From positions 42,111 to 106,110 of the forward strand of contig NIVC01003294.1 in the NCBI GenBank assembly GCA_002269645.1: 64,000 nucleotides of DNA, written 5' to 3'. The DNA comes from Macrostomum lignano (Eukaryota). Position 1 is the stretch's first letter. Each line of letters begins with the position of its first letter. The notes beneath the pieces are model-generated. The model ran no database searches, had not been told where the DNA came from, and worked only from the letters and a program-made list of their open reading frames with translations. The position numbers and the translations under genes are program-made. Positions 13,926-63,001 of the stretch are shown here, in pieces.

Positions 13926-14234
13926 GTCATTCTTGAGTGTGCTTAAGGATCAACAAGGATATGCATTCTGTACATGAAACCGTTTGTTACTTTACTGACT
14001 GAGTCTACTGTCTGCATTTACTACTTGTACTTTAAAGTATGGTAACGTTTGGTATGGTATAATGACGTAACTTTATAAGTATGGTGTACGTACAGGTAAT
14101 TGACGTCTGACTTGACTTGAAAGGATATTGTCGGATCTAAGTCGTCCGGAAAATTCTACTTTCTAGATTTTGCCTATGACCATTCACCACTTGTACTTTT
14201 ATCCTCCCACCTTTGTTTTGCCCTGATTTGGACA

Positions 14235-18996: not shown

Positions 18997-19235
18997 CAAA
19001 AATGAATAGCAATACACTAGCGTACTAAAATGTATCCCACGCAGCTAGCTCTTATCTAATGCATGTAACTATACACACCCCAGTTAAGTTCGTATGCGTA
19101 TAAATTGTAAATTACAGGGCAGTGATTTAACAAGCTTCCTAAATAGCCACTTTTAGCCGGTGCCTCGAGAATTGCACGGAAACTATTCTTGAAAGCAAAG
19201 ATTTTAAGCGAAGCCTTTTAAACAAATCAATAATC

Positions 19236-25127: not shown

Positions 25128-28100
25128 TCAGGGCTTCCTCCCGGTTTCCAAGATGGTTGGTATCCGTGGCGCCAGATGGCCGATCCCCGAAGACGCAATG
25201 GCGATGCCAGTCAGAGGCAGCACGGCTGTCGTCCCAATGCCAATGGCAGCCAACAGACCCCCCACTTTGGAGACCAGTGAGCTCAGGAGACATTTCCATC
25301 GCTGGCGGTACTCATCTTCAGGCATTCCCGTCGTAGCTTTGCGGAATAGCAGAACAGAAGCTTCCACGACGCTGAAGCCAATGATAAAAACGAAACCCAA
25401 ACCTTCACACCAGAATGTTTTGCCATCAGGAACGGCTGGGGTAATGTCTGCAAAGAACTGAATAACTCGGTTGACTAACTTTGCGAACTTTCCGACGCCC
25501 TTAAAAGCGGATGTCGCCGTCAGCGCCCAGTCGCTGAGCTGAAGACTCGTGAATCGACCGTAGATCAGAAAGTTCACAAAGTGCTCGCAGTTATTAAACA
25601 GCAGCTTGTAGTTCCTTGCGCCTTGACAGTCCTTGAACTTCGCATCAATCTTTTCCCAGTCGAGCTCGGTGTTGTGCACCACCTTCTTCAGCTGACCCGG
25701 TCCAGTCACTCGAAGAAATCCGTTGAACTCGTTGATTCCCATCTCCACATTCTCAGCTGGAGCTTCGTAAGTCACGCCTACACCTGTGCACGACTCTGCA
25801 TCCCACTCGACAAGAATGAAGTGCACTCTGGTCACTTTGCCTTGCACCTTACGATATAGCACAATGTGATCGAACTGCTTCAGGCTGGAAGGCGCCACTG
25901 CATCCTCAAGAAATATGGACTCCCCAGGTCGTGAGCTAAGTGTGCCAAACTTGTCCAGCTTAGTCACAGCTTTCTTGATACTCTTCAGTTTTGTTCCAAA
26001 GAGCTTTCGAATGTCGCTGAGTCCCTCGTTTCGTCTTTTGCACTTCAGCCAGTGGCAGAAGTCGTGGCTGGTGACTTTGCTGCCACACTTCTTTTCCTTC
26101 CCTGTCCAACCGCGCATGTCATCGTCCGCGCTCAAGAAAGTGCAGTCCGTGAGCTGATCAATTACTTCGCTGTCGGGTATGACTGACTCAGAGGGACTGA
26201 AACCATCGTAGTTTACTCTCTGAACTGTCTCCTGCTGACTGATGACCAAGACTTCCTTCCTGACGGTCTTGAACTGGTGGTTGTTCTCGTACAAGCGAAC
26301 CTTTACTATGTCGTTGGAATCTTCAAACGTACTGCACTCTCGCATGATCGCATCGTGTGTATAAAAGTTTGGACTCTTGAGAAACTTGATGTGACCTCTA
26401 CCAAAGTTCACCAAGTCCTTTGCACGCTCGATGTCGATGCGGCATTGCTCTCGGTTGCTTCCGTGCTCAATGCTGCACCACCTGGCGAAGTCACGATCAC
26501 TGTTCCACAGAAAGTCGTGCTCTCGCTCACCAAGTCTTGACAATGCTCTTTCGACGACCTTGTCGGGCGAGTACTTTCTGCTTGCTTCGACATTGTAATC
26601 GATGAGGTGTACATGCTGCTTACTTTGTTCATCAATATCAATTTCCATACAATGAGTTTTTAATTGAAATTGCTGGGTTGAGACAGAAGGACTTAACACG
26701 AATGACATCAATTTGCAGACAAGTTTTGTACCGGTAACATTTTCTATAGCCGCCCCTTCTTGAAAACTCTTAGCCTTCTCTGCACCGCTTTCAATACTCG
26801 CTTGATCTGTGAAAACGGTTGGCATCGGAGACTCTGCCAAATCTTTAAAACCTGCGTTTGGTCTTCGATTTGGGTTCTCTACAAGTCGAGCAGTTTTTGC
26901 CTCTTTAGCGCTGTCACTTTCAGAAAAAGTTTCTATAACTATTGTATGTTTGAAGAAACCATACTTATTCCAAAAGCTTATCACGCGGCCTTTCTTTATT
27001 TGCTTAATGTCTGTAACCCTTGTGGCTTTGTAGCTGGGCTTCTCACGACCTCCGCCGTACAGCTCACAATCCTGGTGAACTTCGTTGTGAACGCACAGTG
27101 AAATGCGCTTTTCTTGTTTTAGAATACGGCATTTTAGCTCCATCAGTTCGCCGCTGTCGGTGGAATCTGGCCCTGGGCAGTACTGCACGGTGCGGACTCG
27201 AGTGCCCGACTCAACTGCTCTCACATCCCCACATAACCAAAAACCTCGCCTCCACATCGGGGCGATACCGCCCGGCGATTCGTCTAAACATCGCCGAGCG
27301 ATCGCCCTCATCTCGCCGAAATATCGCGGCTGTCCGCAGGGGCGATATCGTCCCGTATCGCCCGGCGATATCGTTTGGCGAGCAATTGGCGATGAATTGA
27401 CGATACAGTTATAATTCTTGTTTAAATGATAGCATTAAAAATGATTGAAAGAATCAACAGACACAGCTCAATACTGCAAATTTATTATTCCATCAGATAG
27501 CCTATAGCTTTCCTTTAAGTCGCTGGAGACGAAAACTCCACAAGTTCTTATAAATGCCTCCCGATTTTTGAATATATATTTTACTTCAAATGATGCTACT
27601 TACAGCAGCATGTATGGTGAAAATTCAGCTATAAATATGCAGCAGGCAGGGAGAGAAAAATATAATATAGGAGAAAAATAGCAATAGTTAGACTTGAGCA
27701 CTAAAGACTTTCATTTGACAAATATTGAAGACAAATGCTGGGCTGGTTGGCAATAAGAAAAAACATACATTTGACAAGTATGATGCATTCTTGTCATGAT
27801 GCATTCTTGTCAGAATCCTCGAATCTTTAAATGACTTAAATTCGTAACTTAATAAATTTTTGCCCTTTACAAAACCTAAGCCAAGTCAAAATGACACCCA
27901 TAACAATAAAATTTCTTGATAATACCAGGCTGGTATGAACCCGTCTCAATTTGGTCATGCTAATAGAATGACGGTCATGTCATTACATGACTTGAAGTCT
28001 AAGGTGAAAAACCCAGATGACTAAAAAAAACAAAATATTAAATATTTCCGACTTCTTTAACAAGCAATTCGACAGTAAATATCAGTTACTTCACAATGGA

Positions 28101-31100
28101 AAAATTAAATGTAACAAAGTAAAATTCCAGTTACTTTGACTTATCATGCTTGTGCAGAATATCACCCACATCAGAAGTATGCAGTTCAGTTAGTCACCAA
28201 ATAAGTAATTCAAAGGAACAGGAAGTCTAGAACTTTAAATTATTTACCACACTTTGACAGGATGGTACAGGAATGGGCCTCCCAGTCAGTCTCTGGAATT
28301 GAACCTTTGCTTCTGAGGACCTTCAGTCATTCATTGCTCACTCAAGGCCATTGGCATGTTGGTAGGCTGATAATTCATGCTTCGGGAGCATACTTGACAG
28401 ACTGGCCCCCAAAATTGAGATTGTAGAACAGCTGAAAGAAAGGATATAATTGCTTGCATAAATAAAGATGTGAACAAATTTTATTAATCTAGTAAAACTA
28501 GCATTTTTGGTCCAAATGATAAAATAACTAGGATAGTTTCATTTTATATCAGTTCATAAATTTGTAGCTATAGTCTAAATAGAGGTCTTTTGGTATGGAG
28601 AGTTCAAATAATGCATCCATTTTTACTACAAAAAATAACTAGGATAATCCTAATATCAATGCTAAGTACCATAGCTATAACCTGTATAGGGAACAGGGTG
28701 TTAGGCTAGGTAGAAGTATAATATAATATAGTATTAATATAGTATTAGGCCTAGCCTAATCTTTAAAAGAAGCCCACTTTTCTATTTAAGATAAATAGCT
28801 ACTATAAAATATATTAAAAATTGAGATCTAGTCAATTTGAAATGACTAGGCCTAGCCCTAGGGTAGCTAACCTAAACACCAAACCATGGCATAAGAAAAT
28901 GGCTAAGTCAAAAAATATAGATATGGAAAAATGACAATAAACTATAGCCACATATAGTATAGACTACTAGACCTATATTGTAATTGATCTTTAATAGAGA
29001 CTCACTGTTCTATCTAATTTCAAGATCAATGGCCATTATATTCTATAAAATAAGTTTCTAATTAGCATTTAACAATAAGTCAAAGTCTAAAATAAGTTAA
29101 CCTTAATACTTGGACCATGGGGAATATGGCCTATGGGTTATGGTTGGAAAGGCCTATTGTTCTATTCAAGAAGATCAATATCACCATTAATAGCTAGGTA
29201 TAAAAATTTCCACTTGTCAAAAATCCTCCAAAATCCTAAATTTTACATTAGTAGTAGTATTGACATTTGACAAAAGCAGTTTAAGATTTGGACATCAGCA
29301 AGTATTTTATACATCTGATCCTTAAGAAGTCCACAAAAGCTATCTTCTACTTGTAGAATATAGGCTGGAGCTAGTTTAGCTATTTAGAATTTTCCAAAAC
29401 CTAATCAATGCTAGATCAGGTTGAAATTGAAATGAACAATGAAGGAAATTTAAGTTAGGCCCTAATCAACTACATTGGCAGTTGGCACTGATCTAAGTTC
29501 AGTAATAGTTATAATTTCTCTAAAAGAGCCAAAATGCATTTGAATTCTAGAAATGTAATTAAAAGTATGCGTCTACCAACATTTCGAGGTGCAAAATTGG
29601 CATCTGGATGTGCAAAACAAAAGAAATCTAAAAATGAAGTGCTAAAAACACAGTTTGACAAAATAAAACTCTGAGCACTGGACTACTGTTACTATCTACC
29701 ACTATTTACCACAGTTTTTTGTTTCACAAATAATCTTGAGCGTAAGACATGTATAACATATGTAAAAAGGGAACATGCGATCTGATGATCTGTCTTAATT
29801 CGATCAAGACCTCTGACTAGTTGTGCAGCGTCATTTTTAAAAGAGCATACATTTAACGCGTATTTTATCAAATTAATAAATGAATTTTGCAGTCAGAAAC
29901 ACAAAGCAGGACAAGACGACAAAAGAACATATTTTTTATTTTCATATATCAAAACTGCAAATTTAACTTGATATACATCTTATTGGCATCAAAGTTTCAA
30001 GATGAACTTAAAAACAGCGCCAGCCAACCGCTAAAATATCGCGCCGCGATGCACGAACTTGTTTATAAGTACGGTACGATAGACCAAGAAGATAATGCTA
30101 AAACAGAAGAGCATCACTCGCTTGCAACTCACCATTCACGAAGTGACCTTAAATTGCGAATTTATAAGTCGAGTGGGCTAAAATACATGTGAATTAAGCA
30201 TGGATCGCATTCCCAACGTTGTTCTATCGCTCGGCGATGGTGCAATTATCGCCAAGGCATCGAAACTCAAGGTTTTGGCGATTTCGCAAGAATGCGCGCA
30301 AGATGGGCCAATATAGGTTTGAACTTCGTTTTAGTGTCTTTTAGACATATATATAGGACTTTAGAGGCAATTTCCTATCGTATTGATTTATCGCCGATCA
30401 ATATCGCTTAGATATTGCTTAGATATCGCCAGGCGAGATATCGCCTAATATTGCCACGCGATGGGGACGCAAGCCTTTGGCGAGATTCTTGGTTACGTGG
30501 GTCAGTGACCACTCGGTACACGCCGTTCAAGTGAATGATATCACCTGGCTTTAAGAGGCTAGGATTTTGTTTCCGAGGCAACACTTTGGGTTCACACTTT
30601 TTCTCTGGACCTTGCAGAGCAGCTCGTTTCCACTCATCGCCTTGGTGCTCAGTACTCAGCAGTAGCGAGCAAAACGATAAACTCGACTGCTCGGACACCG
30701 GATAAAGAACCCGGTCCAAAAATTGAGTTCGATCACTGAGGTTGATCTCCTTCTGATCCGGAACTGAAGTCACCCGACTGACGGGCTCTGTGAGCACGTG
30801 CTCACACTCGTGAACATATGGAATCCAGGCTGCTTTTCGGGTTACAATTGTAACCAGATACGAATCATCAAGGACCTGTTCCACATCTGTGATCTCTGCA
30901 TGAACTTTACCGAATGGACATTTGATTTCGATGTGATCACCTTCTTTGACAGTGTGGGTTGGGTGCTCATTCGACAGGTAGATTGGAGCCCGACAGCTCG
31001 GACGGTGAGTCGTTGATTCGACCTTGCACCACAAGGCAAACATTTTCGCATTGTTGGAGATTCCGTTGTGCTCTTCTTCATTGAGTCTGCTTCGAGCTCT

Positions 31101-31547
31101 CTGCAGCACTGTCTGAGACGGGTAGCAGCTAACGGGCGGAAACACTTGAAGCCAGCACTTTTCTGTGTTTAGTCTCAGGCTGAATTTCTGTCTGATTATC
31201 CTGTTCGGTGTGATTAAGTTCGATCGACCATAGTGAATGACGTCGATTATGATAAAGTCGGTTGGTGTGTTAGATTGAGTCCTGACGCCCTCAACCACAA
31301 CGAAGTGCACCTGCTTGTAATAGCTGAGCTCGACCACGTCTCCTGGCTTCAGCTTGTCCATGTTCTCCTGAGTGAGTCGGACCTTTCCTTCATCCTTGTG
31401 CTGGTTGTAGAGCTCCTGATCGCTTTCGGTTACCACGTGATATTCGTCGAGCATCGTGTTCAGCTCATCTTCAGCTTCATCGACTCCGCTCTGCTGGAGT
31501 TGCTCTGGTTGTGATTGACGGGTCTGCCTCTGCAGGCTACTTGCCAT
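25128..31547 (-). CDS. Multi-LRAT-domain protein paralog B, split by a DNA transposon into N-part 30502-31547 and C-part 25128-27227
   Basis: Both halves are open frames and align closely, by eye, with the 1058-aa ORF at 50480; breakpoint at RVVTD|VRAVES; C-part retains NNCEHF (~25578-25595) and the hydrophobic tail; 8-aa in-frame deletion (CPSFAVSF) relative to paralog A. Confidence 0.85.
27228..30501. mobile_element. Non-autonomous EnSpm/CACTA-superfamily-like DNA transposon (CCC...GGG, 2-bp TSD)
   Basis: TIRs CCCACATAACCAAAAACCTCGCC / CCCACGTAACCAAGAATCTCGCC (20/23); TC duplicated at 27226-27227 and 30502-30503 compared with the intact paralog; subterminal GCGATAT/ATATCGC repeats at both ends; no transposase ORF. 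Confidence 0.88.
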
Positions 31548-36789: not shown

Positions 36790-38804
36790 CAGCCCAGTCG
36801 GAATGTTTAAGGGGCGTGATGATGCCGCCAATCTCCATCCTCAGTCTCCTCATCTCCATCGCCTGCCTGAAGTTCGAGCATTATCTGGCAGGCGATCCGA
36901 ACTTCACCGTCATGACGGACCATCGACCTCTTGTGCCGCTCTTCAAACCGGGGTCCCGCCCTCCGCCGCGCATCGAGCGGATGGCCCTCCGCATCCAGCA
37001 CCTCCGCTTCACTTTGTTGTACCGGCCGGGACCTGCCAATCAGGCTGATCTGCTGAGCCGCCAGCCGTTACCGGAGCCCAGGCCAAACATCGGCGAGTTC
37101 ATCGATGCAGCATTCGTCAGTGCCGTGTCAGCAGGTGCCGTGCCAAAAGGAATCCAGCCTTCAGCAGATCCGAGACTCTTCAAGGACTGACACGGAGATC
37201 CAGGCTGCGCTCAGCGCGATCAGAACCGGCAGCTGGAACATGCTCGACCCGGTGCAACGCGCACTAAAGTCCAGCAGCAGCGAACTTTCCGAGAGCGACG
37301 GAATTCTGCTCCGCGGAGATCTCATCGTTGTCCCCGAGTCGCTGCAGAGACCGATTCTGCAGCTGGCCCATACGGGACATCTCGGTGCGGACAGAACCCT
37401 GAAGCGACTGCAGACCAAAGTCTGGTGGCCAAAGATGCGCAGCGACTGCGAAGTATTCGTCAAGTGCTGTGTCGGTTGCCAAGCAGCGGCCACGCACGTG
37501 CACCAGACGCCTTTGAAGCCGACGTAGTTGCCGGACGGACCTTGGCAACTGCTCGGCATGGACTTCTACGGCCCGGTGCAAGGTCAGATGCTGCTGGTCA
37601 CCACGGACCTGTACTCCAAGTACCCGGAAGTCGACATCATGCAGTCAACGACGGCCGGCAACGTGACACCGCATCTGAGACGGCTGTTCGGTCGGCACGG
37701 CATCTCTGCTGAGGTCATCACGGACAACGGGACCGCCCTTTAACTCTGCCAACTTTCGCAGCTTCCTCAGCGGATACGGAGTTCATCATCGGCTCATCTG
37801 TCCACTGCATCCGGACTCCAACGGAGCCACCGAGCGTGTCAACAGCATGCATCGGGAAGGTGGTGAAGACTGCTGTCGCTGAAGGTCGGAACTGGAGAGA
37901 GGCCCTGGACGACTGGCTTCTGGCGTTCCGTACAACGCCTCACCGAGCAACTGGGCAGACTCCGGCCGAGCTCCTCATGGGCAGGCCGATCAACGACGGA
38001 ATCCGAGCCAGCAGACAGCCGAAGTCATCTGATGTCAGCCAGGAAGCCGTGAAGGACTGGAACAGGCGGTACACGCAGCAGATGAAGAGTGCGTTCGACA
38101 GGCGCACGGCCTCAAAGGAGCACCGCATCGTTCCCGGCATGAGTGTTCTTCGCAAGCAGCAGGCACGCAAGAAAACGCAGCTGCCATTCGAAACTCAGCC
38201 ATGGACGGTGCAGGAGATTCGAGGCGACACCTGCATCCTACGGCGAGGCCAGCAGTCTTGTATGCGGCACGTGACCCAGCTGCGGCCTCTGATGGAACCG
38301 TCGGACCAGTCCGCCGGCCAGTCAGCCGGCCAGCCAGCCGGTCAGTCTGCCAGCCAGACCGCTAGTCAAGAAGCAGAGTCTGTGGCTCAGAGACGGCATC
38401 CAAGAGCAGCCCGCGACACGCTGAAGTGCTATACGAGTTAAGTAATTGATCCGACATAACGATCAAGCTGAAGCGGTGTACTTCGTAAACAGTTAATTTT
38501 CTTTAGTTCGAAGTTTTTTTAATTCCTTTGGGGGAGAAGGCAGCGCCTACTATCGTGTGTGTTGGGGGGGGGGTTGTTAGCGGCTGCGCCACGTGACTCT
38601 GCTAGCTCAACCCTTATGCGTACAATATCAAATGTGCAGGGTGCGACTTTAGCCACCATTCTGACTCAGCTCAATAATTCAATAAACATACTGATCGCTA
38701 TTTTTCTCGCCTGCAAGCTTTCGGCAACTATCGACTACAACAAGCAGTCTAGCCTCGTTTCACTCACTACAGTCGGAAGGTCTCGCCTGTGTAGGTCTGC
38801 AACA
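36790..38804 (+). mobile_element. 5'-truncated Ty3/Gypsy element (RNase H end, integrase, probable 3' LTR)
   Basis: TDHRPL..NQADLLSRQP; HHCC zinc finger (HTGHLG..WWPKM..CVGCQ); rve core PWQLLGMDFYGP..SKYPEV..TDNG..SNGATER; G-tract followed by TGT(38575)...ACA(38804); several frameshifts. Confidence 0.85.
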
Positions 38805-44192: not shown

Positions 44193-46295
44193 CATGTGTA
44201 AAGAGAGCATAGCTACATATGCTTTATGTACTTTATCTTAGCTATTCTATAATATTTGGTATATTCTATTCAAAAAGGCAAAAGCCATGAGAAGATTCTG
44301 TTGACTATTCAGTGCATTTTGCTTCTTATCTTAATGGTCTACCTTTAATACAGTCTTATCTCTTTATCCTACTTTATCCTACTAAAAAGCCAAGCAGTCC
44401 CTTTGTCCCAAAGAGTTCCTTTTAAAATGATATGCAACTACTATGCTTGGCGCTGCCATTTTAACAAGCTCTTATTGTAAACAATAAAACTTCTTAAGAT
44501 TTTTTATTTTTCTTTCATATGCACAAGAAACCAAACCAATGACTCAATTACAAAACTATAGTATAGTGTATAACATGCCTTAGCGTAAAATACCGTCATT
44601 TTTGCCAAAAAATGAAATTTTTCGTGTGATTTTTTTCTAAAGCCCTATATACACGTCAATTGAGATTTTCTTCAAAGAAAAAGTGCTCCAATCAAATTAA
44701 AAGATGTTCAACAACTATTCTATTGCTTTTCGCTTAGGTAAATGCATTGGCTTCGATAATGCTTTCGTTTTTGTTGGCGGCAAAAATGACGGTAAAGAAA
44801 AACCGTCAAGTTTGACACGATATCTTCATTTTTGCCAATAACTTTACTATGATTTTATCGCCAATGTATTTTGTATGGAATTACAAAATTTTTAGGGAAA
44901 TCTAAGCCTGCCTATCCTGCATTGATAACTGAAAAAATGAAATGAAAATAATATCTCAGTTTCTCATAAAATAATACTTACTAAATAAAGATTTTTTCAT
45001 ACATGTGCGCTTAAAATTTTTCCAAAAAAGAATCGCTAAATCTTTGAAACAATTTTTGTTTCGAAAATTCTGATAAAATTACAAAAAATATGAATGCAGT
45101 TACTAAAAGTATACTAGTTGCGAGTGTTTTATTGTCAGCTAGTAAGCAACACTGCAACACAAAATTAGTCTCAATATACTAAATCTGACGTGTTGTTTAT
45201 ATGTGTGTAGTGTGTTCGATAACGATCCTCCCAAAGACCTAAAATACTGCCAAGTCAGCGTTTCTATATCTAAAGCTGAGAGGGTTTAACGCGTATGATC
45301 TCTTCCTAGCCGCCTGCAATTCAAATTCGGGACTTATCTACATGTATATATATATTATACTGTATATATTATATAAACTCAAACCTAATATTAGAATAGT
45401 GTCCCAGTAAAAAAAAGTCTGCACTAAAACAGGCGGAAAAAATAATTTAATTAGGACCTTAAGGTGTCAGGCAAATACTGTACTATGATTTATCTAACAT
45501 ATTTATTATATTGACACTAGCTAGAGCGCACAACCGCGACCCACTGCATTAACCCATTGTTCTGTAGCATTACAAGCGCAGCCCCCCGTAAGCAGGGGCG
45601 TAGCGAGGGGGGTATCGGTGTATCGGCCGATACCCCCAAATTTCCAAAGCAAAAATTTTTTTATTTACTTTTTTTAGTTGCAAGTGACCGTTAAGGAAGA
45701 GAAAGGTATCCGAATCGATAGAATAACAATTAACAAACGAATAGAGTGATTATATGTAATAGTATCATTAATAGCTTGTATGCATTAGAAATACATTAAG
45801 GCCTAAGGGGATGTGTGGATCTCAAGTCATTTCATTGCTTTCTTTGTACTCGTATAACTTGGTCCTTGGACAACTATCAACTATCAACTCATTCTCCCTA
45901 CCGACCAACCGACTATTAAGGGGTGAGGGGGGTGAGTGGATAACCGAGGGGGTGGCCGGGTGGGACTGGGGCGTGGCCCGTGGGCAGTCTGCCAGCTGAG
46001 CCAGTGGAATCAGTGATGAACAATGGGGTGGGTTGGCCGCAAGTTACAAGCCAACAGCCCCCCTCCCGGCTCCCGGGGCAATTCGCGTTCAATACACAAC
46101 ACAGTTTTGAACACTGAAGCAAGCCATCAAATCCAACGGCGGGCGGGAAGTCCAGCAGCGAATAAAACTTAAAACGTCTAAAAACGCTCAACATTTCGAC
46201 CAATACTATCTGCTTCTAAAAAGGAACTCATCCAATCGCAAGGCAGCGGGCTGAATAAGAAGCTTTCATTCAAAAAATATATATACATGTATGAA

Positions 46296-46822
46296 GTCAA
46301 CGAATTCAACCCAAATTTGCCAAGCCGGATCAGCAGATTAGCGGCTAAATTTCTACAGGCTACTAGACAGCACTGATACATGTATGATGCAGAAAGAATT
46401 GTTTAAGTAAGTCAATCGGCTTCCAAGATATACAAAGGCGGAGAAATAGCCATCTTATAGTGTATTTAGATAGGAGAAAGTCAACGAATTCAACCCAAAT
46501 TTGCCAAGCCGGATCAGCAGATTGGCGGCTAAATTTCTACAGGCTACTAGACAGCACTGATACATGTATGATGCAGAAAGAATTGTTTAAGTAAGTCAAT
46601 CGGCTTCCAAGATATACAAAGGCGGAGAAATAGCCATCTTATAGTGTATTTAGATAGGAGAAAGTCAACGAATTCAACCCAAATTTGCCAAGCCGGATCA
46701 GCAGATTAGCGGCTAAATTTCTACAGGCTGCTAGACAGCACTGATACATGTATGATGCAGAAAGAATTGTTTAGTAAGTCAATCGGCTTCCAAGATATAC
46801 AAAGGCGGAGAAATAGCCATCT
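46296..46822 (+). repeat. 184-bp tandem repeat, ~3 units
   Basis: GTCAACGAATTCAACCC recurs at 46296, 46480 and 46664. Confidence 0.95.
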
Positions 46823-48507: not shown

Positions 48508-48683
48508 CAGTGGCAAAGCCAGAAATTTTTTTCATTCAGCTTTTTCACTCTTCTGGGCCCATTCAGCACCCAGGTTAGGGGGTATAGGAGGGCGGGTTTT
48601 TTCTTGGGGATTTCAGAAGGTGGAGCGATTTTTTCAGGAAGGTAAATTTCAAGGAAGGGGCAGGCCCCCCGGCTGCGCCACTG
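48508..48683. mobile_element. hAT-like MITE inserted in a 184-bp unit
   Basis: TIRs CAGTGGC(AA/GC)AGCC; 8-bp TSD CTGTCTAG/CTGCCTAG (1 mismatch). Confidence 0.7.
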
Positions 48684-48687
48684 CTGC

Positions 48688-49682
48688 CTAGTAGCCTGTA
48701 GAAATTTAGCCGCTAATCTGCTGATCCGGCTTGGCAAATTTGGGTTGAATTCGTTGACTTTCTCCTATCTAAATACACTATAAGATGGCTATTTCTCCGC
48801 CTTTGTATATCTTGAAAGCCGATTGACTTACTTAAACAATTCTTTCTGCATCATACATGTATCAGTGCTGTCTAGTAGCCTGTAGAAATTTAGCTGCTAA
48901 TCTGCTGATCCGGCTTGGCAAATTTGGGTTGAATTCGTTGACTTTCTCCTATCTAAATACACTATAAGATGGCTATTTCTCCGCCTTTGTATATCTTGGA
49001 AGCCGATTGACTTACTTAAACAATTCTTTCTGCATCATACATATATCAGTGCTGTCTAGTAGCCTGTAGAAATTTAGCCGCTAATCTGCTGATCCAGCTT
49101 GGCAAATTTGGGTTGAATTCGTTGACTTTCTCCTATCTAAATACACTATAAGATGGCTATTTCTCCGCCTTTGTATATCTTGGAAGCCGATTGACTTACT
49201 TAAACAATTCTTTCTGCATCATACATGTATCAGTGCTGTCTAGTAGCCTGTAGAAATTTAGCCGCTAATCTGCTGATCCGGCTTGGCAAATTTGGGTTGA
49301 ATTCGTTGACTTTCTCCTATCTAAATACACTATAAGATGGCTATTTCTCCGCCTTTGTATATCTTGGAAGCCGATTGTCTTACTGAAACAATTCTTTCTG
49401 CATCATACATGTATCAGTGCTGTCTAGTAGCCTGTAGAAATTTAGCCGCTAATCTGCTGATCCGGCTTGGCAAATTTGGGTTGAATTCGTTGACTTTCTC
49501 CTATCTAAATACACTATAAGATGGCTATTTCTCCGCCTTTGTATATCTTGGAAGCCGATTGACTTACTTAAACAATTCTTTCTGCATCATAAATGTATCA
49601 GTGCTGTCTAGTAGCCTGTAGAAATTTAGCCGCTAATCTGCTGATCCGGCTTGGCAAATTTGGGTTGAATTCGTTGACTTTC
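48688..49682 (-). repeat. Same 184-bp repeat in inverted orientation, ~5.4 units
   Basis: Reverse complement of the 46296-46822 unit. Confidence 0.95.
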
Positions 49683-50479
49683 GCCTAACTAGATTCACAG
49701 CTGCTTACTCCCCTTCGCTACACAAAATGCTACTTTGCTTTTTGTATAAGTATTAGTTCTAGTAGTATGTATCGAATTTTTTGTTTTATAATGTTATCTT
49801 CGAAGTTGGAATGGAGTAAAAAATAGATTTCGTGAAAGTGAAAGTATTTTATTTTCCTACAAGTTTTCCTGCTGTCTCATTGCTCGAAATTAGTACAAGA
49901 GACAAAAGTGATGCAAGAAATTGTAGAAATAGGGCTAAACGGTGGATTTCCTGCCTTTAAATGAGATGAAAAAAATGACGGTAGCTTGTCAAAAATGACG
50001 GTTGCTGGGACCGTCAATTTTGCCAAAGTGTAAAAAACGTTACCGTCACTTTTGCCGCCTTATATTAATACGAATTCGTATTATCCTTCCATATAACCGA
50101 TGCATTTGGATGCTAAATGTTTTCTATTTTTAATAAAGTACTTAATTAATGCCGTAGAGCCAGCCATTAGGTGTTTAGAAGGCTTTATGTAAACACAGTT
50201 TTTTGGACGAAAAAGTCAAACATATTTTTTCCCGCATTTTTAGTGAGAATATTTTTTTCAGTTTCAAATAGCTGATTGAAAGAGAAACTATGCTCTATAA
50301 AATTTTATGTTTTTGAAAGATTTTAGTTTACTCTTTTATTTGTATATTCTATTTTGTAATTATGCTTCTCCAACAAGTAGATAAAGCAAATACATTTTTT
50401 GGCAAAAATGACGATAGTATGGTAAAAATGACGGTATTTTACGCTATATGCTAATAACTTTATCATTTTAGAACTCAGA

Positions 50480-53400
50480 ATGGCAAGTAGCCTGCAGAGG
50501 CAGACCCGTCAATCACAACCAGAGCAACTCCAGCAGAGCGGAGTCGATGAAGCTGAAGATGAGCTGAACACGCTGCTCAACGAATATCACGTAGTAACCG
50601 AAGGCGATCAGGAGCTGTACAACCAGCACAAGGATGAAGGAAAGGTCCGACTCACTCTGGAGAACATGCACAAGCTGAAGCCAGGAGACGTGGTCGAGCT
50701 CAGCTATTACAAGCTGTTACACTTCGTTGTGGTTGAGGGCGTCAGGACTCTGCCGGACACCCCGGCCGACTTAATCATAATTGACGCCATTCACTACGGT
50801 CGGCCGAACTTGATCACACCAAACAGGATCATCAGAGAGAAATTCAGCCTGAGACTCAACACAGAAAAGTGTTGCCTTCATGTGTTTCCACCCGCCAGCT
50901 GCTACCCGTCTCAGACAGTACTGCAGAGAGCTCGAAGCAGACTCAATGAAGAAGAGCACAACGGAATCTCCAACAATGCGACAATGTTTGCCTTGTGGTG
51001 CAAAGTCGAATCAACAACGCACCGTCCGAGCTGTCGAGTTCCAATCTACCTATCAAATGAGCATCCCACCCACACTGTCAACGTCGGTGATCACGTCGAT
51101 ATTGAATGTTTAGTTCGTAAGGGTGATAAGATTCACGCAGAGATCACAGATGTGGAACAGGTCCTTGATGATTCGTATCTGGTTAAAATTGTAACCCGAA
51201 AAGCAGCCTGGATTCCATATGTTCACGAGTGTGAGCACGTGCTCACAGAGCCCGTCAGTCGGGTGACTTCAGTTCCGGATCAGAAGGAGATCAACCTCAG
51301 TGATCGAACTCAATTTTTGGACCGGGTTCTTTATCCGGTGTCCGAGCAGTCGAGTTTATCGTTTTGCTCGCTACTGCTGAGTACTGAGCACCAAGGCGAT
51401 GAGTGGAAACGAGCTGCTCTGCAAGGTCCAGAGAAAAAGTGTGAACCTAGAGTGTTGACTGGGAAACAAAATCCTAGCCTCTCAAAGCCAGGTGACATCA
51501 TTCACTTGAACGGCGTGTACCGAGTGGTCACTGATGTGAGAGCAGTTGAGTCGGGCACTCGAGTCCGCACCGTGCAGTACTGCCCAGGGCCAGATTCCAC
51601 CGACAGCGGCGAACTGATGGAGCTAAAATGCCGTATTCTAAAACAAGAAAAGCGCATTTCACTGTGCGTTCACAACGAAGTTCACCAGGATTGTGAGCTG
51701 TACGGCGGAGGTCGTGAGAAGCCCAGCTACAAAGCCACAACGGTAACAGACGTCAAGCAAATAAAGAAAGGCTGTGTGGTAAGCCTTCGGAATGAGTATG
51801 GTTTCTTCAAGCATGCAGTAGTTATAGAAACTTTTTCTGAAAGTGACAGCTCCGAAGAGACAAAAACTGCTCGACTTGTAGAGAACCCAAATCGAACAGC
51901 AAATGCAGGTGATAAAGATCTGGCAGACTCTCCGATGCCAACCGCTTTGACAGTTCACGCGAGTATTGAAACCGGTTCAGTGCAGCCTAGAATGAGCGAA
52001 GAAGGTGCAGCTGTGGAAAATGATACCGGTACAAAACTTGTCTGCAACCTGATGTCATTCAAGTTGAGTCTTTCTGTCTCAACCCAACTGTTCCAATTAA
52101 AAACTCATTGTATGGAAATTGATATTGATGAGCAAAGCAAGCAGGATGTACACCTCATCGACTACAATGTCGAAACAAGCAGAAAGTACTCGCCCGACAA
52201 GGTCGTCGAAAGAGCGTTGTCAAGACTTGGTGAGCGAGAGCATGACTTTCTGTGGAACAGTGATCGTGACTTTGCCAAGTGGTGCAGCATCGAGCACGGA
52301 AGCAACCGAGAGCAATGCCGCATCGACATCGAGTGTGCAAAGGACTTGGTGAACTTCGGTAGAGGTCACATCAAGTTTCTCAAGAGTCCAAACTTGTACA
52401 CACACGATGCGATCATGCGAGAGTGCAGTAAGTTTGAAGATTCCGACGACATAGTAAAGGTTCGCTTGTACGAAAACAACCACCAGTTCAAGACCGTCAG
52501 GAAGGAAGATTTGGTAATCGGTCAGCAGGAGACAGTTCAGAGAGTAAACTACGATGATTTAAGTCTCTCTAAGTCAATCATGCCCGACAGCAAAGTCATC
52601 GATCAGCTCACTAACTGCACCTTCTTGAGCGCGGACGATGACATGCATGGTTGGACAGGGAAAGAAGCGAAGTGTGGCAGCAAAGTCACCAGCCACGACT
52701 TCTGCCACTGGCTGAAGTGTAAAAGACGAAACGAGGGACTCAGTGACATTCAAAAGCTTTTTGGAACAAAACTGAACGGTATCAAGAAAGCAGTGACTAA
52801 GCTGGACAAGTTTGGCACACTTAGCTCACGACCTGGGGAGTCCATATTTCTTGAGGATGCAGTGGCGCCTTCCAGCCTGAAGCAGTTCGATCACATTGTG
52901 CTGGATCGTAAGGTGCAAGGCAAAGTGACCAGGGTGCACTTCATTCTTGTCGAATGGGATGCAGAGTCGTGCACAGGTGTAGGCGTGACTTACGAAGCTC
53001 CAGCTGAGAATGTGGAGATGGGATTCAACGAGTTCAACGGATTTCTTCGAGTGACTGGACCGGGTCAGCTGAAGAAGGTGGTGCACAACACCGAGCTCGA
53101 CTGGGAGAAGATTGATGCCAAGTTCACGGACTGTCGAGACGCAAGGAACTACAAACTGTTTTTTAATAACTGCGAGCACTTTGTGAACTTTCTGATCTAC
53201 GGTCGATTCACGAGTCTTCAGCTCAGCGACTGGGCGCTGAGGGCGACATCCGCTTGTCCCTCTTTCGCTGTGTCGTTCTTCAAGGGCGTCGGAAAGTTCG
53301 CAAAGTTAGTCAACCGAGTTATTCAGTTCTTTGCAGATATCACCCCAGCTGTTCCTGATGGCAAAACATTCTGGAGTGAAGGTTTGGGTCTCTTGTTTAT

Positions 53401-53656
53401 CATCGGCTTTAGTGCCGTGGAAGCTGCTATTCTGGTATTCCGTAAAGCTACGACGGGAATGCCTGAAGATGAGTACCTCCAGCGATGGAAATGTCTCGTG
53501 AGCTCACTGGTCTCCACAGTAGTCGGTCTGTTTGCTGCCATATTCAGTGGGACGACGGCCCTGCTGCCTCTGACTGGCATCGCCATTGCGTCTGCGGGGA
53601 TCGGCCATCTGGCTCCACGGGTGCCTGCCATTGTGGAATCTAGGCTAAAGCCCTGA
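50480..53656 (+). CDS. Intronless 1058-aa protein with tandem LRAT/PLAAT (H-box/NC, permuted NlpC/P60) domains and a hydrophobic C-terminal tail; paralog A
   Basis: Long open ORF; the last repeat has RVHFILV...YKLFFNNCEHFVNFLIYGRFTSLQ (PLAAT signature NCEHF..YG...S.Q); earlier repeats have LKPGD..H..IHY..NNATMFALWC, NSDRDFAKWC and TSHDFCHWLK; splice-acceptor-like TTTTAG just upstream of the ATG. Confidence 0.9.
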   Translation: MASSLQRQTRQSQPEQLQQSGVDEAEDELNTLLNEYHVVTEGDQELYNQHKDEGKVRLTLENMHKLKPGDVVELSYYKLLHFVVVEGVRTLPDTPADLIIIDAIHYGRPNLITPNRIIREKFSLRLNTEKCCLHVFPPASCYPSQTVLQRARSRLNEEEHNGISNNATMFALWCKVESTTHRPSCRVPIYLSNEHPTHTVNVGDHVDIECLVRKGDKIHAEITDVEQVLDDSYLVKIVTRKAAWIPYVHECEHVLTEPVSRVTSVPDQKEINLSDRTQFLDRVLYPVSEQSSLSFCSLLLSTEHQGDEWKRAALQGPEKKCEPRVLTGKQNPSLSKPGDIIHLNGVYRVVTDVRAVESGTRVRTVQYCPGPDSTDSGELMELKCRILKQEKRISLCVHNEVHQDCELYGGGREKPSYKATTVTDVKQIKKGCVVSLRNEYGFFKHAVVIETFSESDSSEETKTARLVENPNRTANAGDKDLADSPMPTALTVHASIETGSVQPRMSEEGAAVENDTGTKLVCNLMSFKLSLSVSTQLFQLKTHCMEIDIDEQSKQDVHLIDYNVETSRKYSPDKVVERALSRLGEREHDFLWNSDRDFAKWCSIEHGSNREQCRIDIECAKDLVNFGRGHIKFLKSPNLYTHDAIMRECSKFEDSDDIVKVRLYENNHQFKTVRKEDLVIGQQETVQRVNYDDLSLSKSIMPDSKVIDQLTNCTFLSADDDMHGWTGKEAKCGSKVTSHDFCHWLKCKRRNEGLSDIQKLFGTKLNGIKKAVTKLDKFGTLSSRPGESIFLEDAVAPSSLKQFDHIVLDRKVQGKVTRVHFILVEWDAESCTGVGVTYEAPAENVEMGFNEFNGFLRVTGPGQLKKVVHNTELDWEKIDAKFTDCRDARNYKLFFNNCEHFVNFLIYGRFTSLQLSDWALRATSACPSFAVSFFKGVGKFAKLVNRVIQFFADITPAVPDGKTFWSEGLGLLFIIGFSAVEAAILVFRKATTGMPEDEYLQRWKCLVSSLVSTVVGLFAAIFSGTTALLPLTGIAIASAGIGHLAPRVPAIVESRLKP

Positions 53657-56600
53657 ATCGACACCATTGAAGCGGATTTGCGTATTTTAGCTTATCCTTT
53701 TTTCGGCAATAGCTAGAGCTTTTTATATTGGATCGAACCTTACAATCAAAAGATGTCGTCTGAATTTGTACATGCGAGTACGCTCGTACTTATCTTTTAT
53801 AAATAGTTTGTTACGAACTCGTATCTGAATTGCCATCTCCAATTGACCTATATGTATCATCTGTCTATCAAATCTACATCGGTCGATATTTTCTTTTGTA
53901 TACAGTTCATTGACAGCTTGCGTATTAATGCAGGCAAGATCGATAGCTACACTAACCAGTCTAAACTATACATGGTATACTAGTTTATTATTGAATTATT
54001 ATTCATTATTAGAATTAATTGGTTCTGCGTTTAATAGCTATAAAAACAATTGGGCTTTATTTTTCTTTCAGCTACTCCATGCACTACATTTGTTCAAAAA
54101 ATATAATTGAAAAAGTAACTATACTAACGCAAAATTTGGTTATTTTATTTTTTAAAGTCATATGTGCAGTGTAAAGGGTCAACAAGTTGTGTATCAAATA
54201 GCTATGTAGCTTCCTAATAAAATGCCTTGATAATTTGTTTCTTCCTTCCTTGTAGTAGGATTTACATCTACGATAGCCTAATTCGGGTCGGGACCCATCA
54301 GGAGGAGCCAGAGCCGTCCCTCTTGGCGAGGGTGTACATGTATACGTCTGCCAACTCCTTCCCTGGCATTAAACCTGCGTACCCTGGGATCCACTTAACC
54401 TGACATTGCTACTGGCTAGGGGAGTTCTTAGTGGCGTGGCAAAAGAGCCTGCAGCGAGGCCGCGCTTTGCTGTCACAGTGGGTGACGAGATATACATACA
54501 TGTAATTTAGATATAGTCTCTTCTCTTGTACTTTTGGCATTCAGTTCTGCAGCTAGCTTAAGCTAGAGCTGTGATAGCAAGCTAGGACAATTCGTTCTAG
54601 AAGACCGTGTAGCTACATGTAGCTACATGTATATCTGTATAGCGAGTCTGCCATATATCGCGTCGCGCTATAGCTAGCGAGCTGCAGGACATGCGTGGCA
54701 ATGATAAATTGCAATAATGTTTCGTAACCATATGATTTACCGGCGATACAAAAGCTGCTATTTCAGCACCGGACGGCGCCTATACTATATCGGACTTAGC
54801 TAATTCTTTTGAGACATCCTCCGGGGGTGCGTCAGCTGGAAGATATGCTAGCGCCGTTCCTAATTGCTTGTTGCAAACTGATAGATAAAAATTAAATTGT
54901 TAAAACATGCATGTGTAATTTTCGACACATGGATATAAAATTATGCACGTCTTTTAGAACATTGAAACGGATGCAAAATTCTGGAGGTGGGGCGTGAGCC
55001 ATCATAAATAGCTACATATGTAGATATCGAGCTCCTCGACGCAGCATGGCGTCTTTTCCTGACTGAGGATGATCGTCGCGCACTCATCCGCTTCTTGGCA
55101 AGACCGATTGTGCATGGTTGGTGAAAAGACAGATCGGGAAGGTTTTTCCCATGCATTCAGTCAGTGTGTCGGGTTCCGTCTCTCCACGTGAGAATTGCAC
55201 TGCGCGCGTCATCAGATGGAAGCTGCATGAGATGACCCAGCTCGTGATCAGGGAGGGTGCCCCACAGCTAGCCATCTGCTACTTCGGCCGACGTTTCCGA
55301 CAATTATATGTACTTTTATACATTGCATAATGGTATACATGTAGACTTCATACATTAGTAATATCCGTCGGCTGAATCCTAGGCAGCTCACACACTAATT
55401 GTCTTATATTCATTTGGAGTTGTTAGTAGGCTCCACAATACATGTAAGTATCTTCATGTAAATTGAGTCTTGAAGCGGCTTGCGAGTGGAAGCTTGAAAA
55501 GCAGCAAGCGAGCGAAAGATCTTGTGTATATTTGTTTAAGCATAGATTTTATACTTCAGAGAATAGGGAGGTGTGAGTCAGACCGAACTGGCTGGCTGGG
55601 CAAAACTCAGTCTGACTCACTCTGACTCAAAAATGCAGTGCAGGCGTGCAGGGGCCTGTGCACAGGCGGGCCCCGCTCTCAACCGTGCACCAGTCTGGCC
55701 GCCACAGTCTACATATGTACATGTAGAATAGTTTTTATTGGTTGAGTGACGATTTGTATGTATAGCTGACCAACTTAAAAGCATGCCTATATTTGCAGAT
55801 GACGCGAGTGTCCTATTCAAAGTAGATCACAAAAAAGTTTAAGATGACGATCGTTGTAGTAGGATGACGAAGTGTGTATGAACCGACTTAATTGGTTCAA
55901 AGACCGCCCAGCCTTTTTCATACTTCACTGGTCAATGCAAGGACCACTGTATAGCTATATACTTCGTACAGTAGTTGTCCTTGGGTCAGTAGTCATGCTA
56001 AATGCACCTTCGCAATGACTAATAACAATTTATTAAACAAATTTCTATTCAAATAGTAAATTATTAATTTTTTACTATTTTTTTACAGTATTGTTTGTAA
56101 GATAGTAATACTAAAGAAACTTTGTTTAATCTAGAGAGTAATTGCGTTTGTTTTTCAAACTTATGCTGTTTACCATGAATTGAAATTGCGCAAGGGAATT
56201 TGCTAGACTGCCTGTAGTGTTATTATTCTTTTGTATTCTTTAACTGTAACTTAAAGATTTAAGATTTAATTTACTCGGTGCCGCTGACCATACCCCCAAA
56301 ACTGATAAAAAACAACTGTTGAAAAAATATAAAAGCAATGACGAAAAATTTTTACAAACCTGTAATCTCAAGATTCTGTAACACTTTAATAACAGTAGTC
56401 AGTAGGTCTATAACAGTTAACAGTAAAAAAATAAAAACTAAAAAAGAAGTATAGAACTAGAAGTATGGTATAGTAGTGGGTCTATGATCAAGTCAGGGGG
56501 TATGAGTTCCTATTATTTTGTAGCTATGTAGCAATAACAACAACTACTAGCTTGCTCCATAATTTTTTTATAATTGGTACGAAACACTTGGTACATAGGG

Positions 56601-59818: not shown

Positions 59819-62800
59819 ATGTCTCTGGCTACATTTCGCCATTCTCTGCGGCCATTGTGCCGGCTGGCTCTATACCAGCAAAGAAGTCCCATGAGCGTTG
59901 ATCATCATGCAAGCTCTTCAATGCAAGCTCCTTCTACGGCATTGTCCAGCACAGATTCAAGTGCAGCCGCAGTCTCTGGGGATGCCCAACAGGCCCACCG
60001 GCTGGCCATATTTAACGAAGAGTTCGAGCGTCAATTAAAACGATCCAAACGATCTATTGATAAAATCGAAGTTGTCTATACTGGACCAGACGGTCAGTCG
60101 CATAGTCTGTTTTTAAACAAAGGCGTCTCAACTCCACTAGACGCTGCTAAGCATCTGTCAGAGGAATTGAGCTCGGAATCGGTGCTGGCTATAGTTAATG
60201 GCAGCACAGCCTGGGACATGCATCGGCCATTGAATACCAGCTGTTCCTTGGCGTTTCTTAACTTTAAAACTCCCGGCAGTAAAGAGGAAGCTGATGGTAA
60301 ATATTATTTGGGGTGTATTTAGAGATATGGGAAGAATGAAGAAAGGTAGAAAGGTCGGGAAACTGACAGCTCAGCCGCAGCTATTGCTTATTGCATCTGA
60401 TGGCTGCGTACGGCTGTTCAGTCCAAGGACTGGAGGGTCGCCACACACACCCTCAATTACCCCAGCTAATGCTGGCACCCATTTTACAGCTGGGTGAACT
60501 AAAACAATGCAGAGTTAAGCGTCTTGCTCAAGGACACAAATTGTTCCGAGTGGGATCGGGAATCGAACCCCCGACCTTTCGGTCGGGATTTCAACACTAA
60601 CCGCTAGGCTAGAATCCCCCACTAAGCTACAATCCCCCACTAGGCTACAATTCCCCACTAGGCTACTATTCCCCACTAGGCTAAAGTCCCCCACTAGGCT
60701 ACTATTCCCCACTAAGCTACAATTCCCCACTAGGCTACAATTCCCCACTAGGCTACAATTCCCCACTAGGCTACAATTCCCCACTAGGCTACGATTCCCC
60801 ACTAGGCTACTATTCCCCACTAGGCTACAATTCCCCACTAGGCTACAATTCCCCACTAGGCTACAATTCCCCACTAGGCTACAATTCCCCACTAAGCTAC
60901 AATCCCCCACTAGGCTACTATTCCCCACTAAGCTACAATTCCCCACTAGGCTACTATTCCCCACTAGGCTACAATTCCCCACTAGGCTACAATTACCCAC
61001 TAGGCTACAATTACCCACTAGGCTACAATCCCCCACTAGGCTACAATTCCCAACCCCCATTAGGCTACAAAGATTAAGGACGTTAATGTTATGCATTTTC
61101 TTCTCACTTCTGTATAACATCAATCAGTTTTTACTGATACTAAGAAATTGGTTGAACACAATGCTTTAAATAATTTTCCGATATGTTGTGTGAATAATTT
61201 CTTCGTACCCCAAAAGCCACTTTGCTTAACGAAAAAAGCAAATCGTCTTACGTTGCTATTAAAATTGTTTTCAAAGGTATCAAGTTGTGCAACACAGCGC
61301 TTTGGCGATCGGGCTCTCTACTGATTGGCTCGGTATTCGAGACCGCTTTCAAAGAGGCCTACAATGTCAAGCTGATCAGTTTCCCTATTCCTTACATCAA
61401 AAGTGGAAGCTTCGTCTACGACTGTCAGGTATGAGAACCCGAGATTTTTTTTATTCTGACATTGACAAATACAGGTCAGAGAAATCTCCAGATGACCTTA
61501 ACAGAGACGGGGAAATCCCTAATTGACCTTGGCAGACCGGTGGGAAAATCCCTAAACGACCCTGACAGAACTAATATGGGCAGAACAGCGGGGAATCCCT
61601 ATATTGCCGGCGCAGAGTGGCCGGCGGAGAATCTCTTAATAACCGGGGCAGAATGGTTGGGAATCCCCCAATAACCGGGGCAGAATGGTGGGGGAATCCC
61701 TCAATAACCTGGGCAGAATGTTAGGGAACTCCCTAAATGACCTGAGCAGAATGACGGGGAAATCCCTCAACGACCTGGGCAGAATAGCGGGAGAATCACT
61801 CAACGATCTGGGCAGACTGGTGGGGGAATCCCTCAACGACCTGGGCAGAATGGCGGGGGAATCCCTCAATAACCTTGGCAGAATGGTGGGGAATCCCTCA
61901 ATAAACTTGACAGAATGGCAGGGGAATCCCTCAATAACCTTCGCAGAATGGCGGGTGAATCTCAATAACAGGGGCAGAAAGGCGGGGAATCCTCAATATC
62001 CTTGGCAGAATGGCTCCGAATCCACCAGTAACCTGAGCAGAATGGCGGGTGAATCTCAATAACAGGGGCAGAAAGGCGGGGAATCCTCAATATCCTTGGC
62101 AGAATGGCTCCGAATCCACCAGTAACCTGAGCAGAATGGCGGTGAAATCCCTCAACAACCTGGGCAGAATAGCGGGAGAATCACTCAACGATCTGGGCAG
62201 AATGGTGGGGGAATCCCTCAACGCACCTGGGCAGAATGGCGGGGGAATCCCTCAATAACCTTGGCAGAATGAGGGGAAATCCCTCAATAACCGGGGCAGA
62301 ATGGCGGGGGAATCCCTCAATAACTTTGGCAGAATGGCGGGGGAATCCCTCAATAACCGGGGCAGAATGGCGGGGAAATCCCTCAATAACCTTGGCAGAA
62401 TGGCGGGGGAATCCCTCAATAACCGGGGCAGAATGGGGGAATCCCTAAATAGCCTTGACAAGATAAAAGAACAAATCCACAGGTGTCGCGGGCTGGCAGC
62501 GGCGAGCCGCTAACATGGAGTCCCAGCCGATCGGAATTGCGTGGCCTCAGCCTAGCAGCCGAGCGGCTAATGGCGGCCGATCACGCCTTCCAACCGATGG
62601 ACGCGCCCGGCCCCGTTGTCATGGAGATGTTCAAGCATAACGAAGCAAAACAGGCAGCAATTCGCAGCATACTGCAGTCCAAGCCCGATCAGATTCTAAC
62701 CGTGTATCGCGTTGGCAATTTTGTCGATTTGAGCTCCGGCCCAATGATCTCTCGTACCGGCCTAATTGGCAGGTTCGCCTTTGCCGCTGTGCACCAAATC

Positions 62801-63001
62801 GACGCGCCAGATTTTGGCCAGCTAATGCGAGTGCAGGGCTTCGCCGTGCCGCGCGCTTTCTTGACGCATTTCAGCTCTGTTGAATTGCTGGAACAACGGG
62901 CGGCTGTGTTGAATAGGGCGTTTCTGCCTACTAAGCCTGGCACTCCTAGGAGACCCCAGCAGCAGCAGAAGGACAGGGCTGCTCAGCATGCCGAAGTCTG
63001 A
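59819..63001 (+). CDS. MRPL39: Mitochondrial ribosomal protein L39 (mL39), 3 exons, 382 aa
   Basis: Exons 59819-60296, 61277-61428 and 62483-63001 join in phase (1149 nt); motifs LNKGVSTPLDAAKH..WDMHRPL..C.L.FL.F, ALWRSGSLLIG..AFK..SGSFVYD, YRVGNFVDLSSGPMI..RVQG match mL39; Arg-rich mitochondrial-targeting-like N-terminus. Confidence 0.92.
60361..60619 (-). mobile_element. tRNA-derived SINE family B in MRPL39 intron 1
   Basis: Reverse complement aligns with 13657-13925; B-box GGTTCGATTCC. Confidence 0.85.
60620..61066. repeat. 18-bp minisatellite abutting the SINE head
   Basis: Tandem CCCCACTAGGCTACAATT, ~25 units. Confidence 0.95.
61545..62455. repeat. 32-33-bp minisatellite in MRPL39 intron 2
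   Basis: Tandem GGCAGAATGGCGGGGGAATCCCTCAATAACC(T/G)G variants. Confidence 0.92.

Follow-up and report, generated by a model that had tools for sequence, protein, structure and literature searches.

The subject of this report is an intact open reading frame (ORF) at 50480-53656 on the plus strand of a 64,000-nucleotide stretch of Macrostomum lignano DNA, called the window below (contig NIVC01003294.1 of assembly GCA_002269645.1, forward strand, positions 42,111 to 106,110). The ORF encodes a 1058-residue protein of six LRAT-like modules followed by a hydrophobic tail, and we lean towards the view that it is a real M. lignano thiol acyl-enzyme of the PLAAT type, anchored at its C terminus, in which five non-catalytic, LRAT-derived modules bind or regulate. 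Work on PLAAT and LRAT enzymes has dealt with small, single-domain proteins by which membranes are remodelled or ruptured; in vertebrates, PLAATs clear the organelles of the eye lens, and some are virus host factors or tumour suppressors. The window protein belongs to a family in which one putative catalytic head is fused, in two orders, to arrays of its own inactivated copies, which are kept under selection. It would offer a naturally occurring example of an enzyme with a tandem array of pseudo-enzymes that have its own fold, in an animal amenable to RNA interference and transgenesis, and a tractable route to what LRAT-fold pseudo-enzymes such as LRATD1/2 bind. The system is not new in kind, and the proteins are already deposited as ‘LRAT domain-containing’ or ‘hypothetical’.

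An array of LRAT-like modules

The six modules were named A1, B1, C1, A2, B2 and Act; coordinates within the gene are all on the plus strand. The Pfam LRAT profile (PF04970) scored 53 bits on the whole protein, against a cut-off of 24.3, and matched three stretches. When the profile was run on pieces of the protein, a check that the first-pass annotation of this DNA had proposed, Act scored 26 bits, above the cut-off, and full-length A1 and the C-terminal half of A2 each scored 19.6, below it. B1, C1 and B2, tested singly, gave no match to Pfam LRAT. Self-BLASTP of the window protein found no internal repeats and profiles were needed to see them, so the repeats are either very old or very diverged.

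Each module, aligned across nine paralogues, was compared by HHalign with a profile built on 301 LRAT repeats of non-Macrostomum, mainly bivalve, proteins. The repeat hidden Markov model (HMM) was iterated outside the close M. lignano paralogues, but a few small M. lignano proteins, identified later, remained in it. A1 (residues 60-176; 50657..51007), a full LRAT-like repeat, matched the profile at 99.9% (E 2e-34); A2 (residues 421-604; 51740..52291), a full repeat with an insertion, matched at 99.6%, and Act (residues 796-917; 52865..53230) at 96.9%. The truncated C1 (residues 336-404; 51485..51691) matched at 93.7% over its N-terminal two thirds only (profile columns 5-73), B1 (residues 198-300; 51071..51379) at 90.6% over only 39 columns, and B2 (residues 622-750; 52343..52729) at 90.3% over 101 columns, with S738 on the Cys column. 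As controls, the linker and membrane regions gave 0.2%, and reversed or column-shuffled versions of B1, C1 and B2, 20 for each, gave a maximum of 3.4% (0.4% or less for the B1 shuffles). Run on the window protein itself, the bivalve-repeat HMM scored 92 bits at residues 61-176, 15 + 41 bits at residues 422-462 and 543-603, which make up a single repeat interrupted by an insert, and 11 bits (E 1.8e-5) at residues 804-903; residues 198-238, 336-387 and 630-694 matched weakly. By these profiles A1, A2 and Act appear to be robust LRAT-like modules, and B1, C1 and B2 divergent ones. The earlier count of about six LRAT-like repeats, four of them clear, is borne out, three being found by Pfam and B2 by full-length profile comparison, with partial matches for B1 and C1.

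When paralogue-only profiles of the modules were compared with each other, A1-A2 (99.3%) was the sole significant pair, and A1-C1 was marginal (84%, E 7e-6). Paralogue P0003 has one additional A-B-C set, so A-B-C behaves as a duplication unit, and the window protein would read A-B-C, A-B-Act, then helices. C1 was also considered as a truncated Act-type module, the two having in common a ‘VHN’ motif on the fifth strand; HHalign gave 0.2% for this pairing, and the idea was dropped.

The AlphaFold2 model of the full-length protein has a mean predicted local distance difference test score (pLDDT) of 62, with the modules mostly at 70-88. A1, B1, A2 and B2 are each modelled as five strands followed by two helices, an order that fits a circularly permuted papain-like fold. 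C1 is modelled as five strands only, and Act as five strands plus one confident helix, the NCEHF helix not being modelled. PLAAT structures consist of a four-stranded antiparallel sheet and three helices, with the Cys on the C-terminal helix (PMC4624172). The permuted NlpC/P60 fold is supported for all modules by the sequence profiles together with predicted secondary structure; Foldseek searches of the PDB with the full-length and B1-alone models did not confirm it. In a Foldseek search of the BFVD viral models, the best fold-family match was a Catovirus ‘lecithin retinol acyltransferase’, with probability 0.99 and a weak E value of 0.03 over 138 columns.

Could B1, C1 and B2 instead be Tudor/SH3-like beta-barrel reader modules, not derived from LRAT, in a protein that is a mosaic? 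The top PDB matches of the full-length model in Foldseek, none significant, are Tudor, SAWADEE and BAH-type barrels, and the same folds head the matches of a model of B1 alone; UniProt calls a fragment of a paralogue ‘Agenet-like’, and C1 lacks helices in the model. However, every Foldseek E value against the PDB was 0.1 or worse. The B1-alone model (pLDDT 64) was poorer than B1 in its full-length context and gave no significant Foldseek match in the PDB. The three modules fall on the LRAT profile at 90-94%, versus 3.4% or less for shuffles, and B2 aligns over its full length, Cys helix included. The B and C equivalents in P0003 match the bivalve-repeat HMM at 3e-6 and 2.8e-5, and HMMs built from B1, B2 and C1 each recover bivalve LRAT repeats. 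We consider a mosaic origin improbable.

Residues at the catalytic positions

In PLAATs the Cys is the nucleophile, a first His deprotonates the Cys, and a second polar residue (His; Asn in HRASLS1) orients the first His (PMC4624172). The NCEHF nucleophile Cys is found in Act only, among the six modules, as C898 (53171-53173), together with the first His, H820 (52937-52939), and with Y838 (52991-52993) on the second-His column, in place of the His or Asn of PLAATs. The first-His position, on the second strand, is filled in four other modules, by H81 in A1, H219 in B1, H445 in A2 and H642 in B2. A second-column His is kept only in A1 (H105), whose Cys column holds A167. A2 has Phe and D595 on the second-His and Cys columns, and B2 has no second His (Leu or Tyr) and S738. 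B1 has no second His and probably S292, placed by motif and not by alignment, on its last helix; C1 has neither His and lacks the helix. The corresponding motifs, NNATMF (residues 165-170, A1), SSLSF (291-295, B1), NSDRDF (593-598, A2), TSHDF (737-741, B2) and NNCEHF (896-901, Act), occur once each. The first-pass annotation had listed these degenerate motifs and the single NCEHF, had read A1 as a Cys-to-Ala repeat retaining both His residues, and had noted that the second catalytic His seemed replaced in the last repeat; the alignments agree with it on each of these points.

Act bears NNCEHFVNFLIYG..S.Q, which aligns with NCEHFV of the PLAAT2/3 structures 4DOT, 4FA0, 4DPZ and 7ZOM, and it continues NNCEHFVNFLIYGRFTSLQ, with a YG..S.Q tail as in PLAAT proteins. 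Among PDB sequences it is best matched by PLAAT3 and PLAAT2, on exactly the NCEHF motif region and at marginal E values of 0.075-0.6; a phmmer search with the whole protein against PDB sequences gave noise only. Cys898, His820 and the NCEHF..YG..S.Q signature are kept in 17 of the 18 Act matches of M. lignano proteins and in 90 of 126 relatives. Act is thus far like PLAAT/HRASLS 1-5 (PLAAT3, 4DOT), with which it has in common NCEHF, the first His, the YG..S.Q tail and a C-terminal hydrophobic anchor. The differences are that PLAATs consist of a single LRAT module of ~160 residues, with His or Asn as the third triad residue and one membrane helix, whereas the window protein has six modules, five of them lacking the nucleophile, a Tyr in the triad, and two or three helices.

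Judged from these residues and by analogy with PLAATs, Act most likely has thiol-dependent phospholipase/acyltransferase activity. The reaction would start with His820 activating Cys898 for attack on an acyl ester of a membrane phospholipid. From the thioester so formed, the acyl group would be transferred either to water, as by a phospholipase A1/2, or to an acceptor, as by an acyltransferase. A1, B1, C1, A2 and B2 would be descendants of the same fold in which the nucleophile is gone (the residues in its place being Ala, Ser, none, Asp and Ser, in that order); their most likely role is a non-catalytic one, in binding or regulation, like that of LRATD1/2. FAM84B/LRATD2 keeps H23 and H35, lacks C113 and has no phospholipase A/acyltransferase activity (PMC7140883), and A1 has the same pattern of both His residues kept and Cys lost. 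LRATD1/LRATD2 (FAM84A/B) differ in that they have one domain, with neither an active partner module nor membrane helices in the chain. Lecithin:retinol acyltransferase, LRAT itself, is of the same Pfam family and membrane-anchored, and uses the thioester chemistry that we propose for Act; it differs in being a single-domain, retinol-specific enzyme with a His-His-Cys triad. Viral LRAT/NC-domain proteins (picornavirus 2A H-box/NC and giant-virus LRAT) belong to the same superfamily, but they are single-domain and have no specific sequence relationship to the window protein.

Several observations weigh against an active enzyme. The residue at the second triad position of Act, Tyr838, is neither His nor Asn, and we know of no characterised PLAAT with Tyr there. 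Paralogue P0003 carries Asp in place of the first His, and P0010 and P0027 lack the whole NCEH site, so that parts of the family can do without catalysis. The catalytic helix of Act is placed with low confidence by AlphaFold2 (pLDDT <50 for residues 887-945), and PLAAT/LRAT structures were absent from the top Foldseek matches of the full-length model in the PDB, none of which had E <0.1. Searches of the literature and databases found no direct expression, localisation or activity data for the window protein. The main uncertainty would seem to be the activity of Act with Tyr838, given the paralogues that have lost the first His or the whole site.

The loss of the second His, and the retention of the arrays in P0003, P0010 and P0027 despite their altered or missing sites, would also fit a protein that is a non-catalytic scaffold throughout, with Act dead too and all six modules binding lipids or proteins at the membrane; the vertebrate LRATD proteins are a precedent. 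On the other hand, Cys898, His820 and the signature are retained in the large majorities given above, and Act has the lowest nonsynonymous divergence (dN) of the modules, 0.017-0.024. Moreover, Cys-His pairs without a third residue suffice in other papain-like enzymes. A scaffold is possible, but we are doubtful of it.

Membrane segments and topology

By Kyte-Doolittle hydropathy, Act is followed, as the first-pass annotation had noted, by two hydrophobic segments, which lie at ~966-990 and 1003-1045; the second may be two helices. With the model helices taken into account, two or three transmembrane-like helices are placed at ~966-988, 1003-1025 and 1026-1044 (53375..53611). Between Act and these segments lies a long helix, residues 918-962 (53231..53365; model helix 910-954, low confidence), that reads as amphipathic by eye. 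Upstream of Act, a helical linker at residues 751-794 (52730..52861) is poorly conserved in the scan of substitution rates and gave 0.2% as an HHalign control. Similarity between the region after Act in bivalve relatives and that of the window protein is colinear but not significant (HHalign 18.7%, E 0.0013).

PLAATs combine the Cys/His pair and second polar residue with a C-terminal membrane helix (PMC4624172). Like PLAATs, which are cytosolic, the window protein lacks a signal peptide; neither a signal peptide nor a hydrophobic N terminus was found in it, and residues 1-54 (50480..50641) are hydrophilic, with pLDDT <50 for residues 1-52. Because the protein has hydrophobic helices at its C terminus and no signal peptide, its large N-terminal part should face the cytosol, giving a cytosolic array with a C-terminal membrane anchor, as in PLAATs. 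The first-pass annotation had proposed a membrane-anchored enzyme carrying pseudo-enzyme sensor or decoy domains; one Cys/His module does stand next to C-terminal helices after a nucleophile-less array, and the sensor or decoy role found no backing.

Related proteins in M. lignano and bivalves

An exhaustive HMMER search of 1.84 billion representative proteins returned 111 proteins at E <=0.001; a word-indexed homologue search, with the single sequence or a nine-sequence alignment, returned only the window protein and a 79% copy. The relatives whose names were looked up are either M. lignano paralogues (P0003-P0007, P0010, P0015, P0027, P0035 and others), some of which are neighbours on a single contig, or bivalve proteins, the genera being Potamilus, Mercenaria, Mytilus, Ruditapes and Dreissena; a bacterial single-domain ‘NC domain protein’ was also among them. 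Their names are generic or automatic, mostly ‘hypothetical’, ‘uncharacterized’ or ‘LRAT domain-containing’. The multi-LRAT membrane architecture is common to M. lignano and bivalves and is already in the databases, and we found no study of it in literature and supplementary tables searched for the gene identifiers, multi-LRAT proteins and bivalve LRAT proteins. That LRAT/PLAAT proteins are single-domain, as had been assumed, holds for the studied vertebrate enzymes, but not for dozens of unnamed multi-LRAT membrane proteins of bivalves and M. lignano.

The window protein combines one NCEH module, hydrophobic helices and at least two Cys-less repeats in one chain, in the order repeats, NCEH module, helices, as is found in 10 of the 17 M. 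lignano relatives of at least 500 residues. In 39 of the 56 non-Macrostomum relatives of that size, those looked up by name being bivalve proteins, the NCEH module comes first, followed by helices and then at least two repeats. The bivalve proteins (for example, Potamilus KAK3603616.1, Mercenaria XP_053378500.1 and Mytilus XP_076105740.1) are thus built of the same blocks in reversed order: one NCEHF module, two to four helices, and Cys-less repeats. A1 and A2 match the bivalve repeats at 92 and 56 bits, with a common signature, RA.SRLGE...F..WC; modules of B or C type are not evident in the bivalve proteins. The B2 HMM (residues 613-752) also matches small M. lignano paralogues consisting of B2, Act and membrane helices, and these show which part is the core.

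His-His-Ser is found at the triad columns in 122 of 211 (58%) Cys-less repeats of the non-Macrostomum, mainly bivalve, relatives (in P0008, P0009, P0011, P0016, P0031 and others); in contrast, no module of the window protein has it. Such regularity suggests more than simple decay; rather than decayed pseudo-enzymes, these repeats may represent a variant with a serine nucleophile, or they may conserve a binding pocket. One can go further and picture Spiralian-specific, membrane-anchored PLAAT-like machines whose Cys-less repeats have taken on a new role, by a switch to a Ser-His-His nucleophile or as an acyl/lipid pocket. The Macrostomum form would then be derived, its modules being target-recognition or bait domains for a single membrane-rupturing head, possibly used in defence or organelle clearance. 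We offer this as speculation that is unlikely to hold as a whole.

The first-pass annotation had raised an innate-immunity system, and one can envisage an effector of immunity or membrane damage, with the pseudo-LRAT modules acting as bait or sensor and the active module as the part that breaks membranes open. The circumstantial evidence is that the genes are multi-copy and lineage-restricted, with at least four M. lignano loci of this subtype, several subfamilies and many bivalve copies; also, vertebrate PLAATs are reported to rupture organelle membranes (PMC10760033). Against this, Pfam found LRAT only, and no immune-type domain, in the window protein and nine relatives; the literature yielded no expression data on infection or wounding; and a ratio of nonsynonymous to synonymous substitution (dN/dS) of ~0.3 is that of purifying selection, not of an arms race. 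The immune proposal is left with copy number as its support, and we think it decidedly unlikely.

Selection on the gene and its copies

The ORF is a complete single-exon coding sequence, beginning at the first ATG downstream of an in-frame stop at 50429-50431, and its product is identical to the GenBank protein called on this contig (P0001 here). Three further loci of this subtype were found. An inverted copy within the window (25128..31547, minus strand, made up of 25128-27311 and 30408-31547) has ~92% nucleotide identity and is broken at codon 352. P0002, on a separate contig, has 1132 residues and 79% identity to the window protein, and P0127 is >90% identical to it.

Against two of these copies dN/dS, calculated by the Nei-Gojobori method, is 0.27-0.39 over the whole ORF (0.36 against P0002 and 0.27-0.39 against the in-window copy). 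By module, and against P0002 unless stated, the values are 0.34 for A1, 0.51 for B1, 0.18 for C1, 0.20 for the C-terminal half of A2 (0.08 against the in-window copy), 0.24 for B2, 0.27 for Act and 0.29 for the membrane region. The protein is under purifying selection, its catalytically dead modules included. A disordered, low-complexity insertion in A2, at ~456-518 (51845..52033; pLDDT <50 for residues 456-516), gave 0.84, and 0.70 against the in-window copy, over residues 463-542, and appears to evolve nearly neutrally. At the P0002 locus (L001 ~10284-10467) there are ~5 extra tandem 36-nucleotide units encoding VEGVRTLPDTPA, inside A1 between the two His-bearing strands; the unit is present in six to seven copies in P0002 and in one in the window gene.

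The gene models of this assembly in GenBank were made from RNA-seq transcripts, with repeat-overlapping transcripts removed, and M. lignano genes average ~5 introns (PMC5730564). Since the models are transcript-based, the existence of one for the window protein is indirect evidence of transcription. These facts bear on the possibility that the ORF is a functionless duplicate, either decaying or associated with transposons. It is intronless, unlike the genome mean; its homology to other copies is confined to the coding sequence; it is bordered by repeats and transposon-like motifs, and the neighbouring copy is broken by an insertion. Nonetheless, the frame of 1058 codons is intact, dN/dS is low and constraint differs by module, and a transcript-based model exists even though repeat-overlapping transcripts were excluded. 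A dead duplicate is, in our judgement, very improbable.

The homology (50468-53657 against 25127-31560 and against L001 9986-13400) begins ~10 nucleotides before the ATG and ends one nucleotide after the stop, which is odd given a synonymous divergence (dS) of only 0.15-0.22; the broken in-window copy and the P0002 locus have flanks in common with each other. A retrocopy was rejected as the cause because the copies have no 3' untranslated region or poly(A) in common. Gene conversion and replacement of flanks by transposons are candidate causes. At its 5' end homology starts at 50468-50470, as judged from an alignment of the three upstream regions and from blastn starts. This is just 3' of a TTTTAG (50466..50471, plus strand), 8 nucleotides before the ATG and read from the sequence as a putative 3' splice, possibly trans-splice, acceptor.

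Flanking DNA

The insertion in the inverted copy (27228-30501; 3.27 kb) is AT-rich, has ATCGCCCGGCGAT-type palindromes near both ends, and is probably a non-autonomous DNA transposon. Just upstream of the intact gene, a 184-bp tandem repeat forms two inverted arrays, at 46294-46822 and 48682-49698, with 2.9 and 5.5 copies and 97-98% matches. The motif AAAATGACGGT occurs 10 times versus 1.25 expected (49972-50052, 50405-50435 and 44592-44793), and its copies, which lie in both orientations, cluster in the 500 bp before the ATG; the cluster resembles the subterminal repeats of a small transposon.

Elsewhere in the window, minisatellites at 14137-14745, 20175-20720 and 60515-61123 give long repetitive ORFs with GNGVLLK and CSLVGN units, Ns at ~18440-19000 mark an assembly gap, and a gag-like ORF with a CCHC-type motif lies at 5365-5943 and an integrase-like ORF at 37836-38441; the neighbourhood is therefore repeat-rich. 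The next called gene downstream, at ~59819-63001 on the plus strand, encodes a 382-residue TGS-domain protein and is apparently unrelated to the LRAT gene.

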